Assembly: GCA_010909165.1 (NCBI GenBank)
Contig: MU008185.1
Span: forward strand, 1-64,000
Direction of reading: 5' to 3'
Source: Anthoceros angustus
Lineage: Eukaryota > Plantae > Anthocerotophyta
Length of the DNA: 64,000 bases
The notes beneath the pieces are model-generated. The model had not been told where the DNA came from. It searched no databases and saw nothing but the letters and a program-made list of their open reading frames with translations. Below are positions 13,718 through 64,000 of this stretch, piece by piece. Position 1 is the first letter of the stretch, and the number at the start of each line of letters is the position of its first letter. The translations under genes and the position numbers were made by a program.

Positions 13718-13784
13718 CCCACACCGCAATTGCTACAACCTACAACGGAATACGGATGATGTCGAACCTCCGAGCTACCCACTC

Positions 13785-29766: not shown

Positions 29767-29777
29767 GGATCGTGTAT

Positions 29778-29840
29778 TAGGGAACGGACGCGCGGAGGGG
29801 CGTCACGGCCGAGAACGGTCGAGGCCGTGAGGCCGAGATC
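29778..29840 (-). repeat. GC-rich terminal hairpin motif, cassette A
   Basis: Minus strand TCTCGGCCTCACGGCCTCGACCG...CCGCGCGTCCGTTCCCTA; homologous to 56800-56852 and 61690-61750. Confidence 0.8.
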
Positions 29841-29899
29841 TACAAAGAATTTGCCCCGCCTTTAACCATCAGATTATTTTCGTTTTTCAATCCTTTTAC

Positions 29900-32800
29900 A
29901 CAATAAAGGATTATCTTCGTCACTGTCGTAATTAGGCTCTAATCAAAATAGTTTTGGTTAAATCACACATATTCTATTGGAGTAGATGGAGTGTAAAATG
30001 GTTCTGGTCGTCCCGTCTCTTCAGAATAGTACTTTTTGAGCTGCTGATTGTATGGTCCAGATAAATGTATAATCATTTCGAATATTTCGTCCAAGCGAGA
30101 ATATTTCTGCAATTTAAACCATTGTCAGAATTCATATATAAAATTGATCTATTTTTTAACTTTAGTACTCACCTCAAAGAGTGAAAACAACTCGTTTTGA
30201 TTCTTCGATAACTACAAACAAAAAGTAAAAGTAATTAGTCATTTACCTCCATTTCAATTCGGAGAAGATCTTTCTTTGCATATACCTTTTCGACAAGCGT
30301 TAAACACGTCTTTGTGAAGATTCCCCACACCGGAAATGTGATCGTATGTTCAAGAAACATAAACATTAGAATTTTTTGGAATGCAAGCGGATATTACCTT
30401 TCAAACGATGTACCTTTTGAATATTTTTAGTTGTCTCGGTTCTTCCATGAGAGACAACAAGTCATCGTTTTCAACTCCTTATTTTCAATTGCTGCCCTAT
30501 CTCGCATTCAATGCATGTAATTACATTACATAGAATTATATGTAATGAAAATAATAGAGAGAAAGAGAAGTTATCGCGCTTACTTGCTTGGATGTCTGCA
30601 TCGCTCGAATGTTGGGTTGGACCCATCTTCATTCAAGATGTGTACTTGCTCTTTTAGACTATGCTCCCAAATTGAATACTTAGTTTTAAAGTCTTGAAAA
30701 GTGGTGGATATTGAAAATTGCTCATCCACTTTCCAAACTCGGTGAACTCAAGTGACGGCCCGTAAGTTGGTCCATCCTCCTTGAAGTCATCAATTTTTCT
30801 CTTTTTGCACGATCAAAACCAAAATCATTACTTTCTTAAACCAAAATCATATTAATCCAAATTATATACATTATACATTTTGTATACCTGATTGGAGATG
30901 GCTGCGTTGTCAATGTTGTTGTCAATCTTATCGACTTTGTCCTTTATATTTTTTGCGGCAACAGCTTGTTTTCCAGCATTCCGTAATGCCAAGTTATAAG
31001 CAAAGAAGCATGTGAAGACAAAAAAAGGTATGAATGTAATTTCAGATTACCTCCAGTACTGCCTGGATTGAACTTTGATATCCCTCCAACATTGTTTGCA
31101 TTGAAATCCCATTAAACCTTTCCACAAGTGTACGCTTCACTCCAATTGAGTCGTTGTTCAAGGTTCTTTTGATATCCTGCAGAGATAAATTTAGGGTTAA
31201 GATTTTGGATTTGAGCATACTTAGATCAAGTTTATGAATTAAGAGCTTACCTTCTTTATCTTATTCAATCAAGGTGCATCTCGCAAAGATGCTTAAGGTC
31301 TTGTTTGTCCATGAGAGAACATTGTGTGCTGTGCAGGATGCAACCCACGGGTTTTGTTAGACTCGACCAGCGAGAACATACAGGACTAACAATCATTTTT
31401 CACGAATACCTTTTCTACGATCTTTCTTATCTCCGGTGGTGGTTCAAACTCTGCGTTAGCGGCATATCCTGGATCCCCATGGGTGGGAAGTAATATGTCA
31501 GAGTGGCGCTCACAGGGTGGCGTCCTGTAGTTGCTGTCTGCAGGGGGTTGACACAACAAATATTAGTAAAAGTAAAAGCAAAGTAAGAAACATATAACAA
31601 TTAAGTACCTTCTTGGATTTGAAAATCGTTATTGCTTCCGTTCTCAGATTCCATCCTGATTCAAAAAAGCCATCAGAACACTTATCATAGTGGACAGCTA
31701 CCGTCAAATCAGACTGAACAAGACGCATCGCGCGCAAAACAGAAACGGGTTGAGCTAGGGCAAATTACTTACGTCCACGATACGTCGCTCCGGGTGCTTC
31801 ACGCGAAACCAATTGTTCGTTCCTGCATCAAAATAATGTTAAAACTGTTCGTCAGCACCAATCCAGTTGAACCTAAAGAACTGATACAAAAAGCAGGCTC
31901 CTGAAAACAAGCACAAGCTCAGGCGCATGCAATAAAGCATGCCGGACTTCTGATTACATGCAAGGTTCGCGGCTAGGGGTAACAAGGCAAAAGTGAAACA
32001 ACTTACGGTCAAGCAAGCACTGGGGCGACGGGCGATGTTTGGCGTGTAGTAGTCCCTGCGATCGACGATGTTGAAGTGAAAGCCAGAGTTATTATGTGTT
32101 CCTCAGAGTGGCTACGAGACAAAGACTGCTACAGAACGGAACGGACTACATCAAATGAAAGAAAAAGACGCTGACAGATATGATAAACGCAGTCAAATAA
32201 AGCACAAGGTCTGTTATTAACCTGAAAACTTGATGTTTGCTTGTGAGGAACCCCTGCGACGAAGAATTGAACACAAGATGAGCGACGGGACAAATAAAGA
32301 TGAAAACGGTCATACAATGAAAGTCAGAGCTACCGCAAACTTACAGGCAGCGAAGTTCTCTGACCTTTCTTGCGTGTCGCAGAAACGTCTTCTGCAAACG
32401 TGCTCTGGAAAACTGAGGTGGGTAGTAGCCACAGCGACGTTGATGCATGTACTTCAAAAAGTCGTCGAAGGGTCAAGGGGCCGGAGGAAGGCGAGAAGAG
32501 AGGAAACACACCTCACTAGAGAAAAGACAACAGCCTGGCAATGGTGAGGGTGCAGGTAGGTGAAGAAATAGGAACCTGGCGGCGAGTTGGGCAGTGGACT
32601 AGGAAGATCGACAGTTGGCGGGCGTGGTGGGCGGTGGTAGAAGAACCGGCGACTGGCGTGGTAGGTGCGTGAAAGGAAACACGAGCTTGGCAGCGTGGTG
32701 GGCGGTAGGCCTAGGAGAGAACCAGCAGTGGACACCAACCTGAGAGTGTGCAATGGGTGTGTGAGGGCGTCCTGCGGTCAAGAAGTAGTCAGGACAAGGT

Positions 32801-33000
32801 CAGTGAGGGAAAATCAAGGGCAAGAAAAGGCAGTGATGTTTAAAGTGATGACAAACAATTGCAAACCCAACCTGACCTTTCTGCTGGTCGCACGAGGCTC
32901 CTCTGCAACGTTCTCCTCCTGTCACGAGGTGGTGGGTGTGATGTGAGCATGGAGCTCTCGCGGGCCAGGCGTTAGAGGGCGGCGGCGAGACCATGGTGAA
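29900..33000 (-). CDS. Multi-exon gene of unknown function (cargo of cassette A); boundaries approximate
   Basis: Short open minus-strand segments bounded by AG/GT splice sites, e.g. DIKRTLNNDSIGVKRTLVERFNGISMQTMLEGYQSSIQAVLE (~31050-31180) and YNLALRNAGKQAVAAKNIKDKVDKIDNNIDNAAISNQ (~30890-31000); lies downstream of the TATA box at ~33370. Confidence 0.45.
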
Positions 33001-33079
33001 CCTTCACGCTCCAGACCCGAGGCAGCGGAGAGCAGCTGGCGGCGTTGTGGGCGTGATAGTTAGCGGGAGGCTGGTAGTC

Positions 33080-33380
33080 CCATTTTAGGGTTCCAGAAGG
33101 TTCGAGGGTCTGTCTGCGTGGCAGTTTGTGGCCAGCCTGCGTTTTACGCCCTGCTGTTTAGAGCTTCGGATTTTAGGTTTGGATCTGCATGGCTAGGTTT
33201 GGAATAGAATGACTAGGTTTGGTTGAGGGGTGGCGGCGGCGGTCGAATGGCGAACCGAGGTTGGTTCGGTGTCCGGCTCGGAAGCTTAGGTTCGGCATTT
33301 TCAAATTAGGTCTGGTAGAGAGAGAGTGGCGGCGCCGACAGAGCGAGAACGGGTAGGGTTTGGTGGCCTATATAAGGCGC
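33080..33380 (-). promoter_or_regulatory. Core promoter/5'UTR of cassette A: TATA box, (CT)n Y-patch, clustered AAACC(C)TA telo-box-like motifs
   Basis: Minus strand CTTATATAGGCCACCAAAACCCTA..TTCTCGCTCTGTCGGCGCCGCCACTCTCTCTCTACCAGACC; homologous to 53060-53400 and 58010-58310. Confidence 0.65.
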
Positions 33381-33479
33381 TCCGTTGGGAGTTCAAAGTC
33401 TTTTCGTGCTGTCTGTGGGGATGGAGTGCGAGGTTGCGTAGCTGCGGTGTGTTAGGGTTTGTAGCTGCTGTTGTGTTTT

Positions 33480-34135
33480 AGGCTTAGCGCTCAATGTGTA
33501 GGGGAAGGCCAAATTGTGTGTGTTCTTTGAAGTTGTATTTCAAGGGCCAAGGCTCTTTCACTATTGTTACGTTTCCGAAGTCCAAGGTCTTTTAGGTAGC
33601 GCTTTTTGGCGCTCTCATAGTGTAGACCTGCCTGTGGTGTCGTTTGTTCCTGTGTCGCGCCTTATTTGCTTCGCGGTACGCTCGCTTCAAGGTGCTTCCA
33701 GGGTCTGCTCCAAAGGCTTAGGACCTGTCGAGTTCTAGTTTCGCAGGCCAATGTTCTTTCAGGCTCTGTTCCCAAGGCTAAGGCCTTCTGTGTGCTGTCC
33801 TTCGAAGGCCTAGGTGTTCCAGGCTATGCTCCGAAGGCTAAGTTTTTGTTCAAGTTTTCCAGGCTCTGCCCCGAAGCTTAAGGCCTTTGTTCAAGGTTCT
33901 TTCAGGCTCTGCTCCGAAGGCTCGTGCCTTTTGCCAGTGTTTGTTCGAAGGCCAAGGTCTCTCGAAAGTTTGTTTCGAAGGCCAAGGTCGTTTTGCTGCC
34001 CTGTTTTGGTTCTTTTCGAAAGGCAGGGGGTTTCCCAGGTCCGAAGGTCAAGGTGTCCACATAGGTCCAGTTGTTCTTGCGTCCAAGGCCAAGGTGTTTT
34101 TAACCGGCCGCTTCGCTTTAGGGTGAAGGCCTTTC
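33480..34135 (-). repeat. Array of ACCTTGGCCTTCG-like motifs (cassette A)
   Basis: CGAAGGCCAAGGT / CGAAGGCTAAG recurs every ~25-35 bp. Confidence 0.8.
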
Positions 34136-34329
34136 GCTCCCATGTGAAGTTTGTCTTTTCGCGTTTTACGTTGTTGTCTGTTGCCTCGTTCTTTCCATTG
34201 TTGTTTTGGCTTCTGTTTTGTGCGGTTTTTGTCTTTGATTGTCGCTATGGCCGTAGTGTATTCGGCTCTCAGTTACTGGTCTCTGTTTGCACTGCGGCTT
34301 GTTTTCGTATGTCGTCCTCTGTGCTAAAG

Positions 34330-37300
34330 TGTGGTGGGCAGATCCCGGGGCTTCCGAGATTCACCCTCTAGTGGCCACACTTATCCCACTCGCTAAGTAC
34401 AATAGGTTTCGTCCCATGAGACTCTTGTTTGTCGGTCACCAGCATCCAAGGCACAAACCACCGCCTCTTCACACCCCAAGCTCCCTCACACAGTGGAGCA
34501 ACTTCAACTCACTCCACGAGTGAGCCCATGCCTCACCATGCGCTCGTCAATCACCGCTTCTAGACCTACAACGACACCCCTCGACTATAGGTCCACCCCG
34601 GCGAGGGTACGCCGTAGGGACCCCCTACGTTGCAGCGACTTCACCACCCGTGATCGTCCACTATTCCTTTCCCATCGCCTTCCCACAATTGGCACACCTC
34701 AACCACCAACTCTAACGGCACGCCACTCCCGCCTCTCCGAATCACCACCCCTGGACCTACAACGACATCCTACAGTCGTAGGTCCCACCCTATGGCGGGT
34801 CCACCGTCTTGCGTAGGGACCCCCGGCAGCGCGACTTCTCCACCCGTGATTTTGAGACCTTAGCCCGGCTTCCGGTCTCGGTTTGGTGCGATTTGGGACC
34901 CTCCCTTAGGCTCGACTTGGGCCTTCTTCTTACTCCTAATCTCTACCTACTCCTCTACTCAACATTCAGCTCCACATTCTCCTCAACATACACTCACCTC
35001 AACTCAACTCCTCATCCTCCTAATCTAACCTTACTTCAAGCTCACTGGCCCTAGCTCGCCTTACGGCTGCCTGGGTCCGCCTACAAGCCAACAAGTTCTT
35101 CCTTGGGCGGTTGCTATGAGTTTGCACCAGACCGAGAACCTCCGAGTCTTTCCTGTAGTCTACCCTCAAGCCGAGAGTTCCTTGGGCATCGCCACACACC
35201 CAAAGCAAAGCAATTTCACAAGAACCATTCACAGGGGAGCAACTGCGGGCGCCCGCAAGGAGCGAGCTCCGCCAAGCACTCCGACCACCGCAAACTCCTC
35301 TACCAGACTGCGTTAGCTTGCACGGCACGAAATTCCTTCACAAGGAGCAAAGGACTCATGAGTTTGGGAGCGCAAGAAGACGATAATTTTACTTCACAAG
35401 CTCCCTCCTTTGTAGGGAGGTCCTCACACAGCCTCCCCTCGGCGCCCCTCCGCACGCCTCACTCCTTATTTTAGTGTATCCCACCGCCGATTTTAAGTTC
35501 GACATCCAAGCATCTTGGGTGAAATTCTATTCTAGCAAATTCTACCTATGTGAGCCTTAATGGCTCATCAACATTCCTATCCAGCTAGTCAACACACCCT
35601 CTTGGGTTGACAAGCATTAATCTGTCCTCCCTAAAGAAAAGTCTCCCCAAGCAATGAGCCCACGCTCCAAGCTACCACCACCCTCTTCAATTACCTCTAG
35701 ATGCCGCCGCATCTGGGTGATCCTACGGATGTAGGGCCACCCTCTACACCTCCTACGGACGTAGGGTCACTTCTTATGGCCCTACCGCCCACGCCTCCAC
35801 GCAAGAAGGTCTCCCGTGGCGGATCTTGCTCCATGCCTTCCTCTTCCTCCTCCGAGTCATCCTCTCGGCCTTCCATACACTCGGATGTGTTTGTCCGGAA
35901 ACTGGAATGCCACCAGTGCCTAGCCTCCACTGCATCTCCTTCAAGTTCCTCTCTTCTCCCCCTAGCAACCAACTTGCCCTTCTTAGGTGCAGCCACCATC
36001 TTGTACCTTCAAAATAAGCGCACAAACAAGACAAGCTTGGGCACGCCCACATGCTCGTTTCCACCTAGTTGTCACCTCGGTGTCTACACACAATTCGAGA
36101 TTTCTTCACTCGCCACATAAAATCCACCAAGAGAGCAACTTCAGCCCTTTTCCACTTACTTCCTCTTCACTCCACGGTCCCACCTAGCTCAAACTTGATG
36201 TCCTCACATACAACTCCTTATCCAAATCCCTCACTTGCAAGGTCCTAGGCACAAAATTCAGCTCCGCCCCTCTTCACAGTTTCAAATCCCTTCACACACA
36301 ACTCCTTATGCACGCACACCTCCTTCTCCTTGCACACACACGGCTCAGCGTTCCCACCAAGTCCTTGCTCTAGCTTTCCTGCATGCACAAGCTCTTCCTG
36401 CACCGCAGCTTCCTAGGTGCCACTCCCTACACACCGCTTGCATGGCCCTTTGGTAGCACAAAAAACTCTTGATATAGGCCTTGATTCCTTGCCATGTGGC
36501 ACTATTTCCACCGTCCTCGATTTAGTAGCCCTACTTGTTATAAACACCCTACACTACCCCTTACATATTTATGGATTATTATTCCTAATATACCCTATTT
36601 ATCCTCAACCTTGCATATAGCTCTTTAACAACTTCCTAGGTTGAAACCCCGCCTCACTTTTGCTTCCAAGTATCCAAGTAGGGTGTCGCGCCCCACTTCC
36701 GCTGCCCACGAGGGACCCCACTCTTCCCACCAAGACACCTCACCCTACCTATCTACCTACCTACCTACCTACCTACCTATCTACCTACCTACCTACCTAC
36801 ATCCTACCCATGTAGGGCCACCTCACCCACATACCACCCTATCTCGTCCCCCACTTGTTCCCTACCGCCTACCCCATCAAGGGACACGCCATCCTACCCA
36901 CATACACAACCTACTGCCACCCTACATCCTACCCACATACATACATGTAGGGCCACCCTCTACACCTCCCTCGTGGGGTGCACCTCCTTCTCCCTACGAG
37001 GGGAGTGCCATGCTCCTCACCCCACCGCCACCCTACACCTCCCTCGTGGGGTGCACCACCCAAGCACCTCAATTAGCTCCTCATCCTCCTAATCTAACCT
37101 TACTTCAAGCTCACTGGCCCTAGCTCGCCCTTACAGCTGGCACAGGTGCGCCTACAAGCCAACAAGTTCTTCCTTGGGCGGTTGCTATGAGTTTGCACAG
37201 ACGGCGAGAACCTCCGAGTCTTTCCTGTAGTCTACCCTCAAGCCGAGTTCCTTGGGCATCGCCACACACCCAAAGCAAAGCAATTTCACAACCATTCACA

Positions 37301-40300
37301 AGGAGCAACTGCGGGCGCCCGCAAGGAGCGAGCCCTCCGCCAAGCACTCCGACCACCGCAAACTCCCTCTCTACCGCCTGCGTTAGCTTGCGGCCACGAA
37401 ATTCCTTCACAAGGAGCAAAGGACTCGGAGTTTGGGAGCGCAAGACGATAATTTTACTTCACAAGCTCCCTCCTTTGTAGGGAGGTCCTCTGACCTCCCA
37501 CAGCGCGCCCTCCGCCGCCTCACTCCTTATTTTAGTGTATCCTCAGTGACTTTAAGTTCGACATCCAAGCATCTTGGGTGTTCTAGCAAATTCTACCTAT
37601 GTGAGCCTTAATGGCTCACTGTCAACATTCCTATCTAGCTAGTCAACACCCTCTTGGGTTGACAAGCATTAATCTGTCCTCCCTAAAGAAAAGTCTCCCC
37701 AAGCAATGAGCCCACGCTCCAAGCTACCACCACCTCTTCAATTACCTCTAGATGCTGCAGGTGATCCTACGGATGTAGGGCCACCCTCTACACCTCGGAC
37801 GTAGGGTCACTTCTTATGGCCCTACTCCACGCTCTCCAAGAAGGTCTCCCGTGGCGGATCTTGCTCCATGCCTTCCTCTTCCTCCTCCGAGTCATCCTCT
37901 CGGCCTTCCATACAGCCGGATGTGTTGGGCTCCTGAATGCCACCAGTGCCTAGCCTCCACTGCTTCAAGCATCTGCCTCTTCCCTAGCAACCAACTTGCC
38001 CTTCTTAGGTGCAGGCGCTTTCACCATCTTGTACCTTCAAAATAAGCGCACAAACAAGACAAGCTTGGCACGCCCACATGCTCGTTTCCACCTAGTTGTC
38101 ACCTCGGTGTCTACACACAATTGAGATTTCTTCACTCGCCACATAAAATCCACCAAGAGCAACTTGCCCTTTTCCACTTACTTCCTCTTCACTCCACGGT
38201 CCCACCTAGCTCAAACTTGATGTCCTCACATACAACTCCTTATGTAAATCCCTCACTTGCAAGGTCCTAGGCACAAAATTCAGCTCCCCCTCTTCACGTG
38301 CTTCAAATCCCTTCACACACAACTCCTTATGCACCTCCTTCTCCTTGCACACACACGGCTCAGCGTTCCCACCAAGTCCTTGCTCTAGCTTTCCTGCATG
38401 CACAAGCTCTTGTGCAATTCCTCATGACTTCCTAGGTGCCACTCCCTACACACCCATGGCCCTTTGGTAGTGGCACTCTTGATATAGTTGATTCCTTGCC
38501 ATGTGGCACTATTTCCACCGTCCTCGATTTAGTAGCCCTACTTGTTATAAACACCCTACACTACCTTACATATTTATGGATTATTATTCCTAATATACCC
38601 TATTTATCCTCAACCTTGCATATAGCTCTTTAACAACTTCCTAGGTTGAAACCCCGCCTCACTTTTGCTTCCAAGTATCCAAGTAGGGTGTCGCGCCCCA
38701 CTTCCGCTGCCCACGAGGGACCCCACTCTTCCCACCAAGACACCTCACCCCACCCATCCACCTACCACTAGTTACCGCCTGTGTCCTGCCACCCACATCC
38801 CACCCTTAGCCACCGCCACCCACATACCACCCCTATCTCGTCCCCCACTTGTTCCCTACCTTGTTCCCTACCCATGTAGGGCCACCACAGTCACCCTACC
38901 TACCTACCTACCTACCTACCTACCTACCTACCTACATCCTACCCACATACATACATGTAGGGCCACCTCACCCTACACCTCCCTCGTGGGGTGCACCTCC
39001 TCCCTACGAGGGGAGTGCCATGCTCCTCACCCCACCGCCACCCACACCTCTCCCAGAGGGGCACCACCCAACACTCTCCCAATTAGCTCCTCATCCATAA
39101 CACCTCACACCTAGGTTGAAACCCCGCCATACAAAAGCTTGCTTCCCAAGTATCCAAGTAGGGTGTCGCGCCCCACTCCGCCACGAGACCTCACTCTCCC
39201 TACAGAGACACTCTCACCCTACCTATCTACCTACCTACCTACACCTCACACACATCCTACCCAGGGCCACCTCACCCACATACTACCCGCATCTCATCCC
39301 CTACTTGTTCCCTACCTTGTTCCCTACCCATGTAGGGCCACCTCACCCTACCCACATACATACATGGGACCTGCCTACCCATGTAGGGTCACCTTGTTAC
39401 CCACATACTACCTTAACTCGTCTCGGACCCTCCGCCTACACCTCCCTCGAGGGTGCACCTCCCTCCCATGTGGGAGTGCCATGCCCTACGTCCACTGCCA
39501 CCCCTACACCTACTCCGTAGGGTGCACCACCCAACACTCTCCCAATTAGCTCTCATGCGATAAGAATATAACACCTCACACAAAAGGTGCCCATCCAGAG
39601 ATCCACCCCTAGGACGCTTAACTCGGGTTCTTACATTCCATTGTCCAACACACCCAATTGGCTTGTGCATAACACTCATCAAGAATAAAATGAACTTATC
39701 CTCGGTGAACTTCTCACGCCTCACAACATCTCGTACCAACCCTCCTTGCTATCCATTTCTCCTCGCCATCACACGGCCTCCTTCACTTTGACTTGCCCCC
39801 CACCGCAAATTCCGCCGCCATGATGCACACCTGTGATCCTTCACCATGTTGCCCCCCACCGCAACACGCCTTCCTATGGTTTGGCCACACCTCCATCTTG
39901 CAGCCCTACAAATTCAGCCGTGAGTGCTCTACCATGGCCTTTCCTAGTTCAACACACGGCCCTATCATGCCATCCTCCATCGTGACTCCATTAGAGCACT
40001 TCCATGTGCCTGACCGCCATGGCCTCCTCTTGCAACCCTTGTGGCTGCTCACCTCAACATGAGCTCCTCGCTCCCATCCTTGCACCGATTGCTGCTCCTC
40101 TCGCATGCCGAGCTCCCAACCTAGAGCCCGCAGCAGATCCCCGCATTCCACCATTACGCACTTGGCCCATCTTCCGCAGAACCCTTGCCACACATCTCTA
40201 CCTAGCAGTCCTCCTCGCAAAATCTCAGCAATATGAGCACCGCCCATGTCTCACTTCTTCCACACATGTGGCAAATTACTTTGCCTTCCTCAAACTTGGT

Positions 40301-40546
40301 GGTGGTCCCCAATAATCGGGCCTTTGCCTCTGCAAGCCTATCAACATGCTTGTGCAGCAACCTCAAGCTACTTCCTTGGCTTAATTGCCTTCACCCTCTA
40401 CTCCTCATTCTCCAACAAATTGCCTCAAGATCTTGACAATTCTCTTCCACTTCACTTCAATTCTCTCGCTTCGCTCTGCTCTAGTTTTGCTCTAGTTTGA
40501 TCCTTTTGATCCAAAAGTAGGAGTGCCCAAACTTTCATATTCCACA
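34330..40546 (-). repeat. 3' LTR (~6.2 kb, including a ~2-kb internal tandem duplication)
   Basis: Collinear with 41878-47615; ~35010-36730 is repeated at ~37080-38750; contains (CTAC)n tracts. Confidence 0.88.
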
Positions 40547-41825: not shown

Positions 41826-41858
41826 GCCTCTTCCACTACCGACTTGCCAAAGCAAAGA

Positions 41859-41873
41859 GTCCCGACAGCGCCA
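41859..41873 (-). promoter_or_regulatory. Primer binding site
   Basis: Minus strand (TTTT)TGGCGCTGTCGGGAC immediately after the ...CCACA end of the 5' LTR; TGGCGC.. class PBS, exact tRNA not assigned. Confidence 0.8.
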
Positions 41874-41877
41874 AAAA

Positions 41878-48405: not shown

Positions 48406-49246
48406 TTCGTGTGAGTTGCTTTATTATTCAGTACAGTAATTCAGTACTTACTAATCTTGTTCTCCTGTTACAACTCTTTTGGTTTTCCTGTCTTACCAGG
48501 TCCTGGTTTCCCGAGTCGTTGGTTCTTTTAAAAGGTGTGGTTGATATTGATGTCTTTAATTTGGTCAAGAAAGTACCTTCTAATGTTTTGGCCACTTTGT
48601 GAATAGTTTGCTGACACGCGTGTTCTGGATGCAGAAAAGCTTGAATCAAGCTACCGGACGTCTTGCAGGATTTCGTCCTGGCGCGACTTCTTAGTGTGGT
48701 ATGCAATTCTGTGTCATACATTTTGATAGTCGATTGGGTTGTTTTTTGGCGTAAAGTTATTTTGTAGCGCATGTGCTTTTTCAGCGCTTTCGTACGATCA
48801 AAGCGCATTTCGATGCATGTCAAGCTCAGTAGTTTGATGGCTTTTTCACTATAATTTTTGTCACTTGAGTTAGTAGTCACTTGTTCACTATAATTGTTGG
48901 CATCTGACTATATCCGTAGTATCTCACTGTGTTTCTGTATGCAGGTTTCAGCCGAGGTTTCTGTCGTGAGATGCCCCGCAGGTATGCAGTGACTCGTAGT
49001 TGAGTATCGTTGTCTGTTTTGTCTGTATTCGATCGTCTGTATTTCCATGTCATGCATAAAAGTTAGTTACTTTCGTGTTCACAGGCGTGACATAATGGTT
49101 ATTCCGTGACTTGTTGTTTATCGCTGGCGCTGCTGCCGATCCGGTTTTGGTTATTATTATCGGTGTATTGTCAGACTTCAATCCGTTTCTGTCTCATTCT
49201 TATTCTAAGGTTCTTGCCTTGATGCGCATAATCCTTGTCCCGATTT

Positions 49247-50720: not shown

Positions 50721-52669
50721 CAGGTACCAGCTTACAACCTGAGACACAACCAGCTACGCAGTAGTGCACACGTGTCGCTGATCAAAATGTATCCAAGTTA
50801 CATCCGGACTGTTCCACCTACACACTTAAAAGCGGACAAAGGCGCCTGATGAAGCGGACCCAACTACCAAAGATTGTTTACTCGGAGAATTAAGACCAAC
50901 ACAACCTCGTAAAAGAAACCGAGGTTAGCCAAACCTCATTGTAAGAGCAAAAGACAATACATGCAAAATAGCATACTGCAATTGCTATCTATACTTCAAT
51001 ACGAATCAGCCATACAATCCTACATACACGACGATGAGACGAGACATATTACTTTCCAGTATTTAGCCAGTGGCGGAGGTACAAAACTACGAGGCAAGTG
51101 TATTCTAACTCTACTCATATTTAAAAGAAACAGTGGAAAGAAACAAAACTGACAATTTATGAAAGAGAGCACTAAACAACATGCAAAACATGCTACAAGA
51201 AAAGGACACAACATAGGAACAAAATTCATGCAACCGACGTTACTGGAAGACACAGCAGAAAACAAAACAAGACGAGCGCGTACGAACCAACCTCCGAACA
51301 TAGACATTGAAGAATCCAAACATATACACTGAAAGAAACAAACACTTGAAGAGACTCAAAGACCTGGATACTCGATTTGGATAATTTGCTTGGGAGACTG
51401 ATATACTATGTGTTCTTACTTACGTCAATCAAAGACTTCTTCAAACAAAAGCAAACACGATGAAAACATAAGTTCGCAACTACAAGATTTTTAGTGCAAG
51501 CAGCAAAGAGACAAAAGTGACATTAAAGAACACAACATGCGAACTCTAAGCACAAAACTCCTAACCGATAACACGGCAAGTTCATAACGAAACTTGACCT
51601 GACGTAAGAAGGAAAAAAGGCATAACAATCAAGTACCCACAGGTCCGGTTGAAAGCTGTTAATTAGGCTGATTACACATAAAAAGGGTGACTAAAGTCGA
51701 CTAAAGTGACGGACTAACCATACCTTCTAAAGCTAGCCTTAACCAAAGCCCCGACGAAAAATGAGGTTAGATAGTCAAAGTACAAACAAAACAAGGAAGC
51801 AACCAACAAACAAAACAAGGAAGCAACCAACAAACAACAAGATAGAAAGTAATCCACAATGAAAAACGATGACGGCCATGTATCGCAGATAACACACTTG
51901 CACCCGAACATGCGGATGTTATCCACCAAAGATGCAACTACCCTTGTCTTGAGGAAGACTAGAACGTTGATTCGTCGATGTCCAATGCGACATCACTGAG
52001 TCAACGTGATCATCGCTTGAGTCAACGATCTATGCTTGTCGTATGCTTTGAAAGCATGCAAGCATTAGATCAAAGCGAAAACAATTATCACTAACTGTCG
52101 ATGACTAACCATACCTCATAAAGGGGCCAGCCTTAAGCAAAGGCTGAAAGACAGAAAATGGACATAAGATAGCTATTATATAAGAAGAAATAAAAAACCA
52201 GCTAACATAAAAAACGGCCAGATAACCTGGACACAACAAGACAAAAAATAAACCACCATAAGACAAAATGACAATCAAACGACAACAAGGTATCGAAGAT
52301 AACTCACAGTTGCAACCAAACATGGAGATGTAACGTCCAATACTTCCACCGATTACTCCGCATAGATCGCAACAACATCGTGAGACAAGAACGTAACAAG
52401 CGTGATTGATAACAACAGACCAAAGTGGTCTAGCAATATAACTTGCATAAAACAAGATGAAGGAACCGCAATGGTCGAACAAAAGAAGTCCAAGTACAAA
52501 CAAAACAAAACAAGGAAGCAACCAACAAACAAAGACCATCAAAGAACATGATACCATCTTTCCTACAAACAAAACAAAGGACACAAAGACGCTTCTGTTA
52601 CAGTTACGTGTTAAGAAACACGAGCATGCAACCACCCTTACTCCTGGTCATTTCTTAAACGACCAGGCA

Positions 52670-53030
52670 CCATGGCCTTTAGAACAGAGCATTCAAAACG
52701 GGGCAACAAAACAACAGTGGCCTTCGAAACAGAGCATAGAATAGACCTTGGCCTTCAAACAAAAGCTGGAGAAAGGCCTTAGCCTGTATGACGCTAAAAG
52801 AACCTTGGCCTTCAAAAGAGTGGACAAGGCCATAGCCTCGAACACGGATAAAAGAACCTTGGCGTAAACAAAGACCTATGCCTTTAGAGCATAGCAACAC
52901 CTTGGCCTACGAAAAGACAGAGAAGAACTTTGCCTTGAGCGAGCGCAACACCATAGCCTCGAAAAGCCAAAGATGCATAAAAGACCTATGCCTTCGGAGC
53001 AAGAGCGCAGCACCTAAGCCTACGAAAAGA
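52670..53030 (+). repeat. Array of ACCTTGGCCTTCG-like motifs (cassette B)
   Basis: ACCTTGGCCTTC / CCTATGCCTT repeats, reverse complement of the 33480-34135 array. Confidence 0.78.
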
Positions 53031-53059
53031 CAGATGAGGAAAGAAATCTATCTCCGACA

Positions 53060-53400
53060 AGCCTCTTATATAGGCCAGCAAACCTAGCCGTTCTCACTCT
53101 GTTGGCGCCTCCATTCTCTCTCTACCAAACCACATTTGAATTTCCCGGACCTAAAATACCGAGGGGTCCAAACATATCTAGGTTCGCATCTGCTGCCGCC
53201 TCCTCACCCAAACCTAGTTTCCAAGTTCTAAACCTAGCTTACCTTCACCAAACCTAGCCTACCTCCACCAAACCTAATCTCCGAACCCCAAAGCGGCGGG
53301 GCGTAACACAAACCTGCCGTCGAATCACAGCCTGCCACGTTGACACCAGCCGTGAACCATCTAGAACCCTAAAACTTCAGTACATAAACAACTGCCACCC
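53060..53400 (+). promoter_or_regulatory. Core promoter/5'UTR of cassette B
   Basis: CTTATATAGGCC at 53065, then TTCTCACTCTGTTGGCGCCTCCATTCTCTCTCTACC and repeated AAACCTA. Confidence 0.65.
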
Positions 53401-53819
53401 TAATTCTGTCGCGCGCCACCGCCCATCACGCCATCAAGCTCACCGTGTTTTTGGTGCTATTGATCGCAAAAGGTTCTGGCATCTGGGTTTAGGGTCGCTC
53501 GCTACGCTCAGCAAGTTACAGCCCATTAGCCGCCAGCACCTTACACCGGCATCGTCATCCCTAGCGTTCTCTGGGACGTTCTTGCATCCTCAACGGCGCT
53601 CTCTTTATGATCGAGATCCTCCCGCCCACCACGCCTTGAGTGCTCATGTGTTTCACCCAAGAAACTACGGCAGTGGAAGAGTTCTTGCTGCGATGGCGAA
53701 AAGGTTTGAGAGTGCATGTTCGAGTAGATTGCATAGGTGACAACCAAGTTTTGTACCCGTCATGCCCACTAACAGTCCTATCTTCTTATGTTTTTCTTTT
53801 TATGTCTTTGGCTTGTTGA

Positions 53820-55580
53820 CTGCAGGTCTCCATCATCAAGGTCTTGACATGCTCTTCCAGGTTGGTTTCAGCATCACATTACCTGTTTCCTTGCGATATG
53901 TTGGTCTGTTGCTATCTGTATGCGTGTACGGCATGTGCGGTGATTCCTTTGCCATGTGTTTGTGCATGTTTTAAAGCTTCTTCAGCTCTGGTCGAAAGCC
54001 ACTCAAAGAGTAACGTCCTCACGAGTCTCAGGAGCCGGAGAGGACGGACATCTGGCAGCACCAGATGCTGGTCCACACCGGCTTCCACTAGGCGTTCCAA
54101 GGCGTCATCCCCGAACCCAACCCTCACGAGAACCACACCATCGAGTACATCGCAGAAGTCATCCAGAGGTACTTAGTGAACCATGGGAGCGGCAAGCAAG
54201 CGTTTGCAAGACCCGGACGTGAAGGATGGCTTCCAACCCGAGGTGATGGTGCTAGCCCCTCGGAACGCCTTTGCCGGTTTCTTCAGTTTTGATCATCCGC
54301 GATTTGCCGGCCGATTGTGCATTTGTGATGTCATCCTTGCCGGTCTTTCTTGGGCCGATGCTAATCTCCTGTTGTATCTCGGAAGCCTTCGAGGTGTTGG
54401 CTGAAGACGACCAGCCGGCTCAGGCCCAGCGCATCCTGGCTCCATCGCATAGCTGGGCGGCGCCGGCCACCGGTGCCGGTGCAGACAACGCTGCAACGAC
54501 AAGCTTTCCGCTGACGCCCCTGCGCGGCATCACGCCGGAGTCCCAGAGTTGGGAATCGATCGTCGCCATGGCCTCGATCGGTCGAGATTGAGAAACGGAT
54601 GAACAAGGCGGGGAGGGAAAGTCATACCGGATCGTGAAGGTACCGGATCGGCTCGTGCCGCTCTCCTTGAAGTTCCAGAGTTTGAATGCGCTGGCCACTC
54701 GCACGGAAGGTGAAGCTGGGACGTGAAGGTTTGGCGTGCGTGCGCGCAGGCGCCCAAGCTCAACACGAGCTCCCCGATCGACCATGTGCGAGGCACTACA
54801 CGTCCGCCATGGTGGTGGCGGGCGGCAAGCAAGCGTTTGCCAAGACCCGGACGTGAAGGATGGCTTCCAACCCGAGGTGATGGTGCTAGCCCCTGGGCGC
54901 TCGGTTACGGTTTCTTCGCTTTGATCATCTGGATTTGCGGCCGGTTGTGCATTTGTGATGTCATCCTTGCTGGTCTTTCTTGGGCCGATGCTAATCTCCT
55001 GTTGTATCTCGGAAGCCTTCGAGCAAGTTGTTGGCCTGATTCGAGCCAGCGGCCAGCGCATCATCCGCCGGGCATAGCGGCGCGCCTGGCCACCTACGGT
55101 GCGCTGGTGCAGACAACGCCTGTGACAAGCTTTCATGTTGCCGTGCTGTGCATCACGCCGGAGTCCCAGAGTTGGGAATCGATCGTTCGCCATGGCACGG
55201 GATCGGCGAGATTGAGAAACGGGATGAACAAGGCGGGGAGGGAAAGTCATACCGGATCGTGAAGGTACGGGCCCCGGCTCGGCGTGCCGCTCTCCTTGAA
55301 GTTCGAGTTTGAATGCTGGCTACCCGCCGGAAGGTGAAGCGGGGCGTGAAGGTTTGGCGTGCGTGCGCGAGGCGCCCAAGCTCAACACGAGCTCCCCGAT
55401 CGACCATGTGCGAGGCACTACACGTCCGCCATGGTGGTGGCGGGCGATGGCGTTCGCCACCGAGAGAGAGGACATCATCCGCCACCCGACAATCTCGTGG
55501 TTCGTGGCTGGCCGCCGTGCTTCTGTGGAAGTGCCGGAGCGCACCTGGCAGGCCGGATCTCTTTGCAGCAGAAGAAATAG
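53820..55580 (+). CDS. Cassette B cargo gene, possibly a degenerate Ulp1-like (C48) peptidase; contains a ~640-bp tandem duplication
   Basis: GC-rich coding-like sequence; EVMVLAP...FFALII.DL...LCICDVIL resembles the Ulp1 strand pattern P...HW.L..ID....I...DSL. ~54185-54820 is repeated at ~54820-55445. Confidence 0.35.
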
Positions 55581-56639
55581 CCCATGTATGATATCGATTC
55601 TACTGTATGAAATGACTGACGATATTCTCTTTGTGCAGCACCCTTGGTCGTTAAGAATTATGCGTTGACTCGCGACGGCACTTCAACGAAAAGCAAGGTA
55701 ATCAAGCACAAGTTCAGCAATATTGTCGTCAATCCTCCTCACGTAAACCGATCCGCCAGGTTGTAGGCAACAAGTTGCTTGGTTTCCACCAAGGTGTTCC
55801 TTTGCTCTTCGAGTTAGTTTCGGACTCGAATACTGTTTTCTTGCAATATGCAATTTGTTTCAAGAAGGTTTTAGCGTGGCTCTACTTTTCGATGCGATGT
55901 TGTAGAAACGTGATACGCTATTCACGTTATCTCATGATCGTGTACAAGATGTGCGGTGTGTTCCGTCGCTGTGTGTGCATTTATCACTGTAAAGCGTCTT
56001 TCAGTTCTGATTAAAAGCCACTAATCAAGAAACGTCTGATAACCTTGATGTCTTTGCAGCAAAAGAAATAAACCATGAATGAGTTTGATGTTTGTTCTAC
56101 TGTATGAAATGACTGACGCTAGTCCCTTTGTGCAGCACTAGTGGTCGTAAAGCCCTCAACGTTGACTCGCGATGGTACTTTCAGCGAAAAGCAAGGTAAT
56201 CAACCAGGCAATATTCATCAGTCCTCCTGACGGAAACTAATCCATACTCCGTGTATAGACAGCAGGTCGATTGGCTTTCACTAAGGCGGTGTCAAGCACA
56301 ACGCGAGGGCCGATCGCATCAAAGATCGTAACACACTAGGCGCGGCTTAACAATTTCCATTTCTTGTGTAGGAAAACTAAACGCTTATACCAAGAAGTTG
56401 GTAAGTATCAACCGGTTTTGAGCAGCTTTGTAACTTAAGAACCGCAGTAGCTTAAAGTATACGGCATGCACAGAGCATGCTGCAGCATGGATTCTGGTGT
56501 ATACCCTTTCAACCTGGGTAGAAGATACGTAGAAAAAAAGCAGAACCCTAAAACTGTGAAAGTACTAAGGTAAAATGATGGAGAAAAGCTCGAACACCAT
56601 AAAGTGCGCAAGTAAAACTTTTGCTAGTAATTTTTGCTT

Positions 56640-56852
56640 GAAAGAGAGAGAAAAGAGAGCTATAAGCTGGATGCATTGGGCAACAGATCTTAAGATGCGC
56701 CTGGACCTCGGTACATCGTCGATCTCTGGTCGGCCAGGCGCGTCTCGTGCCCGCCTGCCGCTCCCCTCACGGAACGACGGCGCGGGCGCCACGGCCTAAA
56801 CGGTCTCGCCTAACGGCCTCGACCGTTTCGCCGACGCCCCGTCCGTTCCCCA
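56640..56852 (+). repeat. GC-rich terminal hairpin motif, cassette B
   Basis: TATAAGCTGG...GACCTCGG...CGGTCTCGCCTAACGGCCTCGACCG...GTCCGTTCCC; homologous to 61540-61750. Confidence 0.8.
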
Positions 56853-57654
56853 TACGAAACATACGGACGTGAGAAACTGAAAGAAAGATAAGGAAACTCA
56901 CAGGAAGATGCATAACATCTTCCGAGGACAATCAAGCCAAATGCTAAACGAAACAAATAACAGAAACCTTCACAAACTGGACAAAGAACATACATAAAAC
57001 TCTATGTTCTACGATGGACGAACACAAGGCGACAACTGAAACAAAAATAGGAGATAAAGATGGAAACTTCTTCATGTATCCAGAAACACGGTAGCAACAA
57101 AATAAGAAGACTTACGGCGACTGAAGATGAACATCGTGAACACGGCGACGGCAAACTCCAACAAACAGTAAAAGATAAAAGACCAATTATCCATCTAAAC
57201 AACTGCAAGTCGCAAACGTGAGCGTAAATGAAACACAGAAGCGCTCATACTTCAATGTCCAACCAGTAACTTCAAAACTCCTACTAGCCTCCGATTACAG
57301 GCCTTACGGCCTTTACATTGGTTTCGAGGAAGTAATAAGAAGACAAAGACACGGCCATATAGAAAGATAAACGATAGGAAAGCGACTTCACACACGGAAG
57401 AGCTTAACACACCTCATTGGCAGACAATAGACCTGAACACACATAACAAACCGGCTCGAAGTAAGGTCATCAACAGCCTGGAGCGGAAAAAGAGGCATGC
57501 ACAAAACAAACACGAACACCAACTCAACAACCGCCATGAAGCGAACAGCAGAACAAACTACGGCACAAAACGACAAAGAGAAGAGCGCATACAGTATAGC
57601 GAAAAGAGCGGAGAAAAGCGCCGCACAAAAAGACCAAGACACTCAGAAAACAAA

Positions 57655-57850
57655 AGCATCGGCCTTTAAGCTGAGCAAACCTTGGCCTTCGGAAGCGAAC
57701 AACCTTGGCCTTCGGAAGCGAACAACCTTGGCCTTCGAAGGCGAACAACCTTGGCTTTCGGAAGTAACAACTTCGCATCACAACAAACAGCAAATTTCGC
57801 CTTCAAACTACTTCAAAACTAGACAGCACCTTGGACTTCGACTAACAGGG
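57655..57850 (+). repeat. Array of ACCTTGGCCTTCG motifs (cassette C), including near-perfect 23-bp tandem repeats
   Basis: AACCTTGGCCTTCGGAAGCGAAC x3-4 at 57678-57765. Confidence 0.85.
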
Positions 57851-58009
57851 CTCTTATAAATCGGGATTCCAAAAGGAATCCAGGTACCCCTAACTCCGTG
57901 GAGGAGCTTCGGACATGCGGAAACCTTGGACTACAAAACAAAGGCGACTAGAGGAAGGACCTCGGCCCTTGAAGCTACCCCAGGAAAAGACAAGACCATC
58001 CGAAGAAAG

Positions 58010-58310
58010 GGTTTAAATAGCATACAAAACCCTAACTCTTCTCCCTCTGTCGGCGCCGCCATTCTCTCTCTACTAGACCTTGTTTGAATTTACCGAACCT
58101 AGAATTCCAAACCAACTTCCAAACCTACCTAAATCTGCGATTGGTTCGCCGCCGCCGCCCTAGCTGCCAAACCTAAATTGCACTTACCAAACCTAGCCTG
58201 ACCACACCAAACCTAACCCGAACCTCGGAACGACGGGCGTAAGCCAAGCTTCGACCAATCAAGCGGTGCCACGAGGTCATCGGCAAGAAACTTCCGAACC
58301 CTAACCCATT
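58010..58310 (+). promoter_or_regulatory. Core promoter/5'UTR of cassette C
   Basis: TTTAAATAG..AAAACCCTA..CTCTGTCGGCGCCGCCATTCTCTCTCTACTAGACC, with repeated AAACCTA. Confidence 0.62.
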
Positions 58311-58499
58311 GTTATTCAAAGCATATCGTCCTCATTGCGACTCCTTGCGCGTCCTCGCCCAACCTGCTTGACTCACGCCCGACTTTTGGCTCCACCGGCG
58401 GCACACCGTCACGCTCCATCGGCTCCAACGGTGACGGCACCCCGTCACGCTCCAGCTTCCTCTCTCGCCCAACTTCCTCTATTGCCCATCTCTTGGCTC

Positions 58500-61010
58500 C
58501 AACCATGACTGCACCGCCGGCACGCTCCATCGACTCCATCCGCTCCGTCGCACCCGCCGACACTACCCTTCTTGATGCGATTGGCACAGTTTCAGGTTCT
58601 CTCCGAAGGCGGTGGTTTCCTCCGAGGACGGTTCAGCTAGGTGAGCGTTCCTTACACAATTTGTGAGTGCAGCTATGTGCCCTTTTGCATCTTCCAGCTC
58701 ACCATATTTCATAGGCGGTTCGCGGCTCGCCATATTGTGACAATGAAGCTTCCGTCACTCCATCATAGTAGGACGCCCTTGCGGCACATCGGTGGGCACT
58801 TCTTGGTATGGTGTCTCGACATTGCCGGCCATGAACATGTGTTTATGCCCTCATCCTCATCCATATAGCTGCGGTGGCGGTCGGCAGGTGTGGTGTCGAG
58901 ATCCGGCCCTTCCAAGCAGTGGCTGCTGCTGGAGGTCACGGTCCGGGATGGGGAGGCGAGTCGAGCTACTTCGGCTCGGCGCTACGTCCGGAGGCCGCCT
59001 TAGGCTGCAGTGGCGAGAGGCGGAGGTTCGGGGATGAGGTGACCACTGGCGGATGTGGTGCGATCTCGCAAGTTTACAATGCGATTGCAAGAGGTGGACA
59101 TGGAGAAGTTCCCCACCTGCGGAGGGTCTCGGATGCCTTGTTGTTCCCTCCGGAGGTGCAGGCCACCGCGCGACAAGCATCCGGAGACCCTTCATGTCTT
59201 GGCCCAACCGGGGCCCGGTCACTAGAAAGTGAGTTCGGCCGTGACACGGAACGACTACCTCCGTCATGGTGGATGCGAGATGCGGTAGATATGCCCGCAT
59301 CCCTTGAGATGGGTGTTTGCATCGGCCGGCCATCTCGGTGACCGACTCTGGCGATGACTTGTGTCTGCTGTGCTGCTACGAGCCGTTTGAAGGCAGTGTC
59401 TGCTACGAGCGGCTGTAAGCTTTTGACAAACAAGTCACGAATCTTGCAGACAAGGACCACAAGTAGTGAAAAACTATTACTGAGGGGCTCGGTGACACCG
59501 AGTCAACTCTATGGTAACTAGGTCAACATGTCGCTTGTCGCAAACTTTGCCCTTCTTGGCGATTGTGACAACTAAAAGCGTTTTAATGGCGGAGGCATCG
59601 ATAGTGATGAAATGTTCTTGGCAAGGACACAAGCATTCCATGCGGAGTTTCTTCCAAACTTCTTCCAGTGTATGGTAAATTGGTTCTAGCAGTAATGCTA
59701 ACGCGAAGCTCGAAACTGTATATTTTCCTTTCATTCACGGAGGATCCTTGAACCACGGATCTCATGCTTGGTTCATTATTCTTATACATATATGTGATGT
59801 TCAAGGGCCTCAACCGGTACTATGGAGTGAGAAGAGTCGGGTTGTACTCTCGAAACTTGCCGTCTGGGGCTGTGGGAGGCGAGAAAGTTGGTGAAAATAT
59901 GGATCGAGTTGTGTCTTACTATCTACATCGGTAGCGGAAACCCATTGATCCGTGAGGTCCGCTGTGTTGATGTCCGATGATGGCTCTCATCTATTTTCAA
60001 TGACGTAGAACACAACGCCTTGAACTGCAAGGCAACTTGTTATTGTGTCTCGAGCTTGTTGCTAAGCTTGATCACCGGTATTGCAGTCCATTTGTTGCTT
60101 TGCGTATGTTGCAATGGTGCCTATCACCATTGTTTCCTTTCCTCCTGCATGAATCTATGTAATTTGCGGGTCCTCGGTCCTTATGTGCAACCCTCCTCAC
60201 GGACTTAATATCCTCTTAGGATCCAAGTGAAGTACATGCGTGATCTGCTTGCTTGAGGAGGTGCGTTGAAGAAGCGCGGATGCAGTGGCGTCGAGGATGC
60301 TCGCGGGGTGATTGGTGGGAGACCCGGTGGTCCACACGGAGATCAAGCATGGCGGGCGGATCACGGCCCATCGATGCGCACTGGCATTGGTGGGAATCTA
60401 CCGAGTCATGGGGCTTATTCGGGCGCACCAAAGAAACTCCTGCGCCACTCGGTCTTCATCCTCCCTCGGTGTTGTCTCATTGCAGAATCGGGCTTTGAAA
60501 TGGACTGCATTTGCCGGAGGATGCATCTAGGCGACTTACATGAAGGAATTCATCCAAGGTGCGGTGGCGGTCGGTGTCGAGATCGCTTTCTATTATTTAG
60601 GAGGCCCTTTCTTCGTGGCCCAAGTATTTCCTCGAGCCGCTTTTGGGAGATTGAGGAAGGAAGATCACGGAAGTTGGGCTGCCTTTGGTGGGGTAAGAAT
60701 GCAGCCGGATTACGACTCCAGTGGAGACTATTCTTCAGATGGGAGTGGAGATGTGCAGGACCCGAATCTGTTCGCTCAACCTCTACCTCCGAATGTGGAA
60801 GATCCGAACCAGTCTCCTCCGCAGTCACCTCCAAATGAGGTGCCTCAACTAGATGAGGGGGACCCGAATCAGATCCCTCCACAATCACCAGATGCAGAAG
60901 ACCCGAATCTAACCAGGGTCCCCCTGCAGAAGGTCCTAACCCCCAGACGGGAGATTCGGGAGCCCCTCCTCCACCTGAAGACCACGACGACAGCAACGTT
61001 GAAGTGATTA
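58500..61010 (+). CDS. Cassette C cargo gene of uncertain function (possible Ulp1-like motifs; C-terminal DPNQSPPQSP repeats)
   Basis: Coding-like GC-rich exons: HIGGHFLVWCLDI (~58790), TGGCGAISQVYNAIARG (~59045), a second similar block with PIDAHW / GAVAVGVEI (~60370-60590), and Pro-rich repeats in ORF 60540..61007. Confidence 0.3.
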
Positions 61011-61539
61011 GACGAGCTCAACAAGCATCACTTTGTCACACCACTTGTCAAAACGTATCGATGTCCTTTTTTCATTCGAGCTTGGAACTGGGCATCTAAT
61101 CCAAGACTGACAGTAGTCGCGGAGAAACGATTGAAGGTAAGGTTGTAAGTCATTGGACCATGAAATCGGTACAATGTTGTTCCTCTGCCATGTGGGTTGA
61201 CCCTATTCGCAGATGTGGCCGGTGCGTGTTATTGATCAACGCGATTCTGTTTCTGACACCAGTCGTGTTGCAGTATTGGGCAGGCTTGGAAGCAATAAAT
61301 GGTCACCACGACACGAGCACGAGCTGAAAGCCATACAATTAAGGTTTGTATCCTGCATCTATCGAGTGCAAACCAAGTTTGGAAATCTCTTACCATATTC
61401 CCGTCACGCAGTGTCGCCTGCCATCCCAGAAATAGTGGCTTTGGATGTTGTGTCTCGATACAATCTCCGAGATAGAACTCTTGACTAAGAAGGTGAAAAT
61501 CCGGAAGTAAAAACATCGGACATATTTTTCATCCTAGCA

Positions 61540-61750
61540 AGAGAAAAAAGAATTATAAGCTGGGTACCCTGAGCAACAACTCTTTAATGACGAACAGACC
61601 TCGGCTCCGCCTCGATGCGGTTAAAATTTAGGCTCGGCCTCCCACTCGGCCGCCCCCACGCTGTGGAACGGAGCGCGCCGACGGCCTGAACGGTCTCGGC
61701 CCTAACGGCCTCGACTGCTTTCACGCGACGCCTCCGCGCGTCCGCTCCTA
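61540..61750 (+). repeat. GC-rich terminal hairpin motif, cassette C
   Basis: GACCTCGGCTCCGCCTCG (61597) ... CGGTCTCGGCCCTAACGGCCTCGAC ... CCGCGCGTCCGCTCCTA. Confidence 0.8.
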
Positions 61751-63768: not shown

Positions 63769-64000
63769 TGTTTTTGTATTAAGCTCGCTTTTATTTGCGG
63801 TGTATCAAGAACGGCTTTCAAAAAATTATAAAGTGGACATGAAGAATTACCGAGTGAGCATTTAGTCAAAGGTCAAGATTTAGAAGGATGTTATCGAAAC
63901 TTTTAGAGTCATTATTGAACACTCTCCCAAGTGGTCAAGCGACAAAAATCATCAATTCGGGGTTTTGTTCAATTCAACAATTGATAACCCAAGATCAAAT

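Follow-up and report, generated by a model that had tools for sequence, protein, structure and literature searches.

We analysed a 64-kb stretch of Anthoceros angustus DNA (contig MU008185.1, positions 1 to 64,000; hereafter the window), which is plant-like, rich in transposable elements and of ~50% GC, and in which three units, named A, B and C, share one architecture. We tentatively interpret these units as three old, decayed copies of a single unclassified DNA element family, probably non-autonomous and lacking terminal inverted repeats (TIRs). Unit A lies on the minus strand and B and C on the plus strand, and the modules follow the same order in each: an array of CCTTGGCCTTCG motifs, a promoter-like block of ~300 nt with a TATA box, CTCTGTCGGCGCCGCCA, (CT)n and CCAAACCTA, a middle of ~3.3 kb, and a GC-rich end of ~75 nt (Table 1). 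A preliminary description of this DNA had proposed one architecture occurring three times, and this was borne out by motif clusters, three-way alignments and profile hidden Markov models (HMMs) of the modules, all falling at the three places.

The 5' modules were well above chance. With up to two mismatches, ACCTTGGCCTTCG gave 20 matches in the window compared with 1.6 expected, and 18 of the 20 fell into three clusters, at 33576–34095 (minus), 52714–52996 (plus) and 57679–57840 (plus). The CCTTGGCCTTCG-type 12-mer is present in 7–14 copies per unit, within 350–700 nt upstream of the TATA box. Three-way alignment of the promoter-like block over ~300 nt showed a mean column identity of 74%, and the aligned region contains the TATA box CTTATATAGGCC, the core 17-mer CTCTGTCGGCGCCGCCA (at 33327 on the minus strand, 53097 and 58045), the (CT)n tract, TCTCTCTCT and telobox-like AAACCCTA words. 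Three or four CCAAACCTA repeats are found per block, spaced by exactly 20 nt. At the 3' side, a GC-rich block of ~75 nt common to A, B and C carries the word ACGGCCTCGACCG (29816 on the minus strand, 56813 and 61705) and runs to a GTCCGYTCC end at 29781, 56849 and 61748; B and C share ~200 nt of further similarity upstream of it. The best-kept parts of the three units are 68–83% identical. Across the whole window, profile HMMs for array, promoter-like block and GC-rich end matched at A, B and C only, with no solitary module. Co-occurrence, which the preliminary description had put forward for checking, is thus strict within 64 kb: the modules stand together and none stands alone.

This pattern also bears on whether two or three independent small repeats, resembling miniature inverted-repeat transposable elements (promoter-bearing in one case, a GC-rich hairpin in the other), merely flank different DNA by chance. 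The likeness is limited to short blocks, and interiors and leaders differ, as such repeats would predict; but each of the modules is present in triplicate, with order, orientation and spacing (3.6–3.8 kb) preserved, never alone in 64 kb, and we regard this explanation as improbable. Just past the promoter-like block, moreover, A and B have in common the motif CCGCCCACCACGC and a layout of very short exons. The units are therefore related beyond two modules, which fits common descent better than an exchange of contents; a swapping of cargo genes among units is not supported. The distance from TATA box to end is nearly constant (3602, 3788 and 3738 nt), to which we give little weight because internal duplication accounts for at least 1.1 kb of B.

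Table 1 Coordinates of the three units and of the retroelement inserted in the leader of unit A
Feature	Position	Strand	Remarks
Unit A distal leader	47616–49246	minus	A 39%, T 18%, A-rich on the sense strand; head to head with the B leader at 49246/49247
Long terminal repeat (LTR) retroelement in the A leader, outside the family	34330–47615	minus	TGTGG...CCACA LTRs; target-site duplication TAAAG
Unit A proximal leader and CCTTGGCCTTCG array	33505–34329	minus	14 motif copies; profile match
Unit A promoter-like block	33083–33384	minus	TATA box, CTCTGTCGGCGCCGCCA, (CT)n, three CCAAACCTA at 20-nt spacing
Unit A middle	29856–33082	minus	GC-rich 5' ~0.7 kb with very short exon-like pieces; then AT-rich frame
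Unit A 3' module	29775–29855	minus	GC-rich, hairpin-forming, end GTCCGTTCCCTAATA; joined directly to a truncated integrase gene
Unit B leader	49247–52669	plus	A 40%; two ~220-nt repeat copies
Unit B CCTTGGCCTTCG array	52670–53056	plus	7 copies
Unit B promoter-like block	53057–53374	plus	Four CCAAACCTA-type repeats at 20-nt spacing
Unit B middle	53375–56599	plus	Mostly internal duplication; no credible open reading frame
Unit B 3' region	56600–56852	plus	First ~175 nt common to C only; GC-rich module 56776–56852, end GTCCGTTCCCCATA
Unit C leader	56853–57660	plus	A 43%, T 14%; begins directly after the B end
Unit C CCTTGGCCTTCG array	57661–58003	plus	Four near-perfect 23-nt repeats plus degenerate copies
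Unit C promoter-like block	58004–58303	plus	Three-way alignment, profile match
Unit C middle	58304–61479	plus	First part GC-rich; acidic proline-rich open reading frame 60540–61004, then two or three short exon-like pieces
Unit C 3' region	61480–61753	plus	First part common to B; GC-rich module 61667–61753, end GTCCGCTCCTATA

The similarity among A, B and C stops at one point, 3–6 nt beyond GTCCGYTCC, and three unrelated sequences follow. In A, the 3' module is joined at 29774–29779 to the final copy in a tandem array of retrotransposon sequence with a period of 3.8–5.3 kb, sister copies of which read on as a Ty3-type integrase (Integrase_H2C2, E = 7e-6 at 23820–24062); just after this domain, a core-like ...HGLPRSLVSDHDS... 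is readable in a sister copy. The preliminary description was right that the end of A cuts the integrase like an insertion boundary, although the cut lies ~8 nt from the position 29766 that it gave. Mainly because the end of A matches a break in younger DNA within ~5 nt, which would be hard to obtain by chance, the GC-rich 3' module appears to behave like a true element terminus. Over the junction stretch the array copies are 90–92% alike, compared with 68–83% among the three units; the junction is thus younger than the split of A, B and C, as expected if an already diverged copy inserted.

Within the 3' module, an imperfect inverted repeat of 11–12 bp surrounds a 4–6-nt spacer. The best-formed version is that of B (fold z = −2.5); those of A and C are poorer, their arms matching by eye at 7–8 of 12 positions. 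The general layout of inverted repeat and spacer resembles that of tyrosine-recombinase sites (PMC3212892), a likeness that is only a lead.

The non-autonomous transposon reading is favoured by collinear modules far above chance in all three units, by a 3' boundary that is sharp and common to them, and by ends that are conserved although the interior does not align. The last of these features is what non-autonomous DNA transposons usually show. One non-autonomous Crypton family, for instance, keeps only 438 bp at its 5' end and 260 bp at its 3' end (PMC3212892), and Helitron families are defined by their ends (PMC11417382). Each copy is built like an RNA polymerase II (Pol II) transcription unit, with a 12-nt-motif array, a TATA box, a CT-rich start and a leader carrying telobox-like CCAAACCTA sites at 20-nt spacing, followed by a ~3.3-kb interior, a putative poly(A)-signal region and the GC-rich, hairpin-capable terminal module. 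In the mechanism we propose, mobilisation would occur in trans, by an enzyme recognising the 3' GC-rich module and perhaps also the repeated 5' motifs; the cis-acting head and tail would have stayed alike while interiors drifted, duplicated internally or were replaced. A Crypton-like tyrosine recombinase would be the first candidate for this enzyme and a Helitron-like Rep the second, neither being demonstrated. That the block acts as a promoter, that the units move, that they do so in trans and which enzyme moves them are inferences. If mobility is confirmed genome-wide, the units would represent a family of TIR-less DNA elements new for a non-seed plant, marked by a promoter module kept unusually well and by a defined hairpin end; such a family could help to classify the Crypton-like or Helitron-like elements of such genomes, a fraction that is poorly known, and could be a source of a compact, naturally modular pair of promoter and terminator.

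The middles of A, B and C displayed no blastn or tblastx similarity to one another, and collinear k-mer chains between them were at null level. Global alignment of the B and C middles scored slightly above block-permuted controls (z = 2.3–2.9; 0 of 60 permutations reached the score). Pfam searches of 83 open reading frames (ORFs) of at least 75 amino acids (aa) in 29700–34400 and 47500–64000, together with chosen exon-size pieces, identified no family. Rfam gave no match in the units at the gathering threshold or at E = 0.1, and no tRNA was found by a tRNA search; a snoRNA-host or known non-coding RNA reading was considered and dropped as unsupported, Rfam being empty. For A and C, each exon of the spliced models was searched singly. 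Protein searches retrieved no relatives of the 155-aa ORF of C or of the exon-4 ORF of A, the ESM Atlas returned no usable match for an exon-like ORF of C, and exact-protein look-ups of two window ORFs found neither on record.

Only A has a convincing multi-exon frame among the three middles, an AT-rich frame of ~10 exons (MESENGSNN... to ...PSTPIEYV and a stop) with GT-AG gaps and no known domain; it is interrupted by stops and frameshifts, which may reflect decay or assembly noise. In B, 54189–54824 and 54822–55446 form a 635-nt tandem duplication at 86% identity, 55556–55754 is repeated at 56047–56243 and 53923–54017 at 55939–56036, and the long ORFs on both strands look like artefacts of GC composition. 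The duplicated part at 55556–56243 is an exon-plus-intron-like segment, and the many 1-nt indels between the B duplicate copies suggest age or a noisy assembly. The different cargo genes of the preliminary description did not hold up, given middles devoid of Pfam, Rfam or protein relatives, a B middle that is mostly internal duplication and a broken frame in A. A check inside these three units for a Mutator-like element (MULE) DDE transposase, a Rep/Hel protein or a tyrosine recombinase likewise found none.

The 5' side of the units is less clearly bounded. On the sense strand the leaders are rich in A and poor in T (A 39–45%, C 21–25%, G 18–21%, T 9–21%), and the composition bias flips sharply at the head-to-head junction of A and B at 49246/49247. 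This orientation-linked bias spans 0.8–3.4 kb upstream of each unit (47616–49246, 49247–52669 and 56853–57660), and it does so despite the leaders of A, B and C having no homology to one another. We also considered the leaders as decayed motif arrays and rejected this, as the array words are not enriched in them. In the B leader, a ~220-nt repeat occurs at 49247–49457 and 50498–50720 with 86% identity, its first copy beginning exactly at the junction with A; this repeat carries several short palindromes, such as TGACCATTTGGTCA. In the A leader, the LTR retroelement is flanked by a 5-bp target-site duplication (TSD), TAAAG, at 34325–34329 and 47616–47620; this clean TSD indicates that the upstream DNA of A is contiguous across the insertion, and the interruption of A noted in the preliminary description was thereby corroborated.

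No inverted matches were found between the 3' ends and any upstream part, and a TSD search anchored at the 3' flank yielded only chance-level 6–8-mers and no direct repeat longer than 8 nt. These searches agree with the earlier view that TIR, TSD, LTR and canonical Helitron end are absent, except that A alone ends in CTAA before T. The earlier proposal that A/C-rich leaders form part of the element fared worse: they are A-rich and T-poor rather than strictly A/C-rich, their starts are unalike, and B contains an unrelated 220-nt repeat.

Several observations weigh against a mobile element family. Mobility rests on one sharp boundary, and the integrase sequence resumes nowhere in the remaining 34 kb of the window, so A alone is not a simple insertion. 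The candidate leader starts AAATCG (A), AAAGTC (B) and CGAAAC (C) have nothing in common, which leaves the 5' limit of the unit undefined; if leaders are counted, the conserved 5' block lies 1–4 kb inside the unit. Pfam and ORF searches revealed no transposase or recombinase inside the units. Directly downstream of C, a candidate recombinase-like gene begins at 62290 and extends beyond, with an FGVRGGEE-type motif readable near 63650. Pfam, word and HMMER searches in the window lent its recombinase identity no support, and profile HMMs detected none of the shared modules in the 650 nt upstream of it; it is therefore not a sister unit under the same promoter. Finally, DNA transposition does not require a TATA promoter, and conservation of the promoter fits a functional gene family equally well.

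The last point leads to the main rival, which we consider rather unlikely: a local family of host or domesticated genes, or of long non-coding RNAs, arising from two in-place duplications of one transcription unit, with B and C in tandem and A inverted. The promoter, the 5' leader and the region of 3' processing or termination would then have been retained by selection, and the transcribed middles would have become too different to recognise. Consistent with this, the units look like Pol II genes, with a TATA box, a CT-rich start, a telobox-like leader, GT-AG introns and GC content falling from 5' to 3', and all three lie within 32 kb. The nearly equal TATA-to-end lengths, the CCGCCCACCACGC motif and very-short-exon layout of A and B, the additional ~200 nt at the 3' ends of B and C and the middles slightly above permuted controls point in the same direction. 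However, kept promoters imply important products, yet the middles lack protein-level similarity or relatives; B is mostly internal duplication, weakening the argument from equal length; the leaders are not homologous; and the end of A and the break in the younger retrotransposon lie within ~5 nt of each other, which is unlikely for a plain duplication boundary. Nor were the paralogous bodies of a tandem host gene family found, only B and C being marginally above permuted controls. Were local duplication the explanation, the units would amount to a decayed gene cluster of an ordinary kind amid transposon-rich DNA.

The candidate gene downstream of C is central to a different explanation, a modular system in which interchangeable, unrelated genes would be captured and stacked at the GC-rich recombination site by a tyrosine recombinase, or in which the units would together make up a single giant element as its modules. 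The Crypton-like candidate next to them would take the role of an integron integrase, and the units, free of TIRs and TSDs, would be self-contained expression units. Such an arrangement in a land plant would be functionally integron-like or Starship-like, and we judge it improbable. It accords with the unrelated middles, with a conserved end module bearing an imperfect inverted repeat in each unit, with the position of the candidate gene and its FGVRGGEE-type motif (~63650), and with junctions that have no spacer if leaders are counted (A to B at 49246/49247, B to C at 56852/56853, C to the next sequence at ~61753). On the other hand, stacking rests only on counting leaders as parts of the units; the junctions have no common core, the leaders begin differently, A and C have kept the palindrome poorly, none of the middles can be recognised as a gene, and the inverted orientation of A relative to the other two units departs from that of an ordered array. 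Within the window, the recombinase reading itself drew no support from Pfam, word search or HMMER. The gene has an open N-terminal ORF (MAPKRKPFG..., 62404–62835, 144 aa), and the rest is in short frames, one with FGVRGGEELHNAHRG; its catalytic domain would lie past the end of the window. Pfam, a word search and a full HMMER search all returned no relative of the 144-aa ORF, which has none among 1.8 billion representative proteins. The link between stacking and a recombinase that had been suggested previously was accordingly not substantiated, with no DDE, Rep/Hel or tyrosine recombinase in the units and a neighbour lacking the shared promoter. Compared with integron cassette arrays, the units are alike in their unrelated contents, in the imperfect inverted-repeat site ending each unit and in the candidate recombinase-like gene beside the array; they differ in having their own promoter and introns, no junction core, one inverted unit and a eukaryotic genome as host.

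Returning to the interpretation as a TIR-less DNA element family, we compared the units with known mobile elements, among which non-autonomous Cryptons are the closest formal match. Cryptons have no TIRs or long terminal repeats and sometimes carry 4–6-bp terminal direct repeats. Their non-autonomous derivatives (CryptonI-1N1_RPro, Kojima and Jurka 2011, PMC3212892) resemble the units in lacking TIRs and TSDs and in keeping a few hundred bases per end around an unrelated interior. They differ in that the conserved 5' block of the units could not be demonstrated to be terminal, that short direct repeats were not seen at the ends of the units, that no autonomous partner sharing these ends is known, and that the neighbouring candidate is without the shared promoter. 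No Crypton tyrosine recombinase was found inside the units, and comparison of the 3' flank with upstream DNA gave no convincing Crypton-type short direct repeat, the 5' end being undefined.

Helitrons are recognised by a 5' TC, a 3' hairpin followed by CTRR and insertion between A and T (PMC11417382). The end of A, ...TTCCCTAA followed by T, reads CTAA before T at an A-T step of the integrase, and one of the three units thus has the Helitron 3' features. The ends of B (...CCCCATA followed by CG) and C (...CTCCTATA followed by AG) have no CTRR, and no unit starts with the 5' TC, although the true 5' limit is undefined. Pfam found no Rep/helicase ORF among ORFs of at least 75 aa, which a non-autonomous Helitron would also lack. 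Like non-autonomous Helitrons, the units have a sharp 3' end after GC-rich hairpin sequence, a variable 5' side, no TSD and heterogeneous interiors. The hairpin of Helitrons typically lies ~10–12 nt from the 3' end, whereas that of the units is ~25–33 nt from it. The direct succession of B and C recalls head-to-tail Helitron arrays (HLE1 and HLE2 in PMC11417382). The 12–16-nt TIRs of Helentrons (HLE2), which insert between T and T, were absent, with no inverted matches between the 3' ends of the units and their upstream parts. In Replitrons, short direct repeats at the termini accompany a palindrome at the right end and a Y1 Rep gene (PMC10288648); the units have a palindrome near the right end, no direct terminal repeats and no Rep-like ORF by Pfam, which may miss that Rep. 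For MULEs, Pack-MULEs and non-TIR VANDAL elements, there was no 9–11-bp TSD and no transposase domain by Pfam.

The 5' side of the units also recalls En/Spm (CACTA) elements, in which arrays of short motifs lie upstream of the start site and are followed by a GC-rich untranslated leader. The control region of the units appears alike in both respects and would precede a multi-exon transcript, but CACTA TIRs and a 3-bp TSD are missing. A CACTA element does occupy 245–12018, with TIRs CACTACTACATTTGAGGATCC and ends that differ from those of the units. Both CCTAACGG and CGTCCG occur in its right subterminal repeats at 11343–11632 (...GTCCGATCCTAACGGTTCCGTTC...) as well as in the 3' module, but a CACTA relationship was rejected because the TIRs differ and the profile match was not significant (E = 0.21).

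Arrays upstream of a TATA box are likewise typical of the U3 regions of plant LTRs, and a retroelement with ~6-kb LTRs lies in the same region. Pieces of very long LTRs or derivatives resembling large retrotransposon derivatives (LARDs), with array and TATA box as U3 and the remainder as R/U5, nevertheless seem very improbable. No TG...CA ends, paired copies or TSD were found in the units, nor a primer-binding site (PBS) or polypurine tract beside the modules; the modules have no similarity to the neighbouring LTRs, and the middles have GT-AG intron-like gaps. The inserted element at 34330–47615, by comparison, shows all the hallmarks of an LTR retroelement. A PBS-like TGGCGCTGTCGGG adjoins its right LTR and a purine tract its left LTR, which suggests a minus orientation, and its LTRs are full of internal tandem duplications.

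Other searches concerned the modules themselves. Conserved RNA structure in the shared leader of the promoter-like block was weak, with no real covariation. Scans of metagenomes with the 29-nt promoter core and of viral contigs retrieved no matches. A metagenome scan for three CCAAACCTA at 20-nt spacing retrieved 51 loci, all of them 10-nt simple tandem repeats otherwise unlike the units, and these were discarded as irrelevant. The tandem array that adjoins A, at 12000–29774, consists of a piece of a Ty3-type retrotransposon with a period of 3.8–5.3 kb and copies ~90% alike, and contains 155–160-nt subrepeats, each with its own TATATAGCC box.

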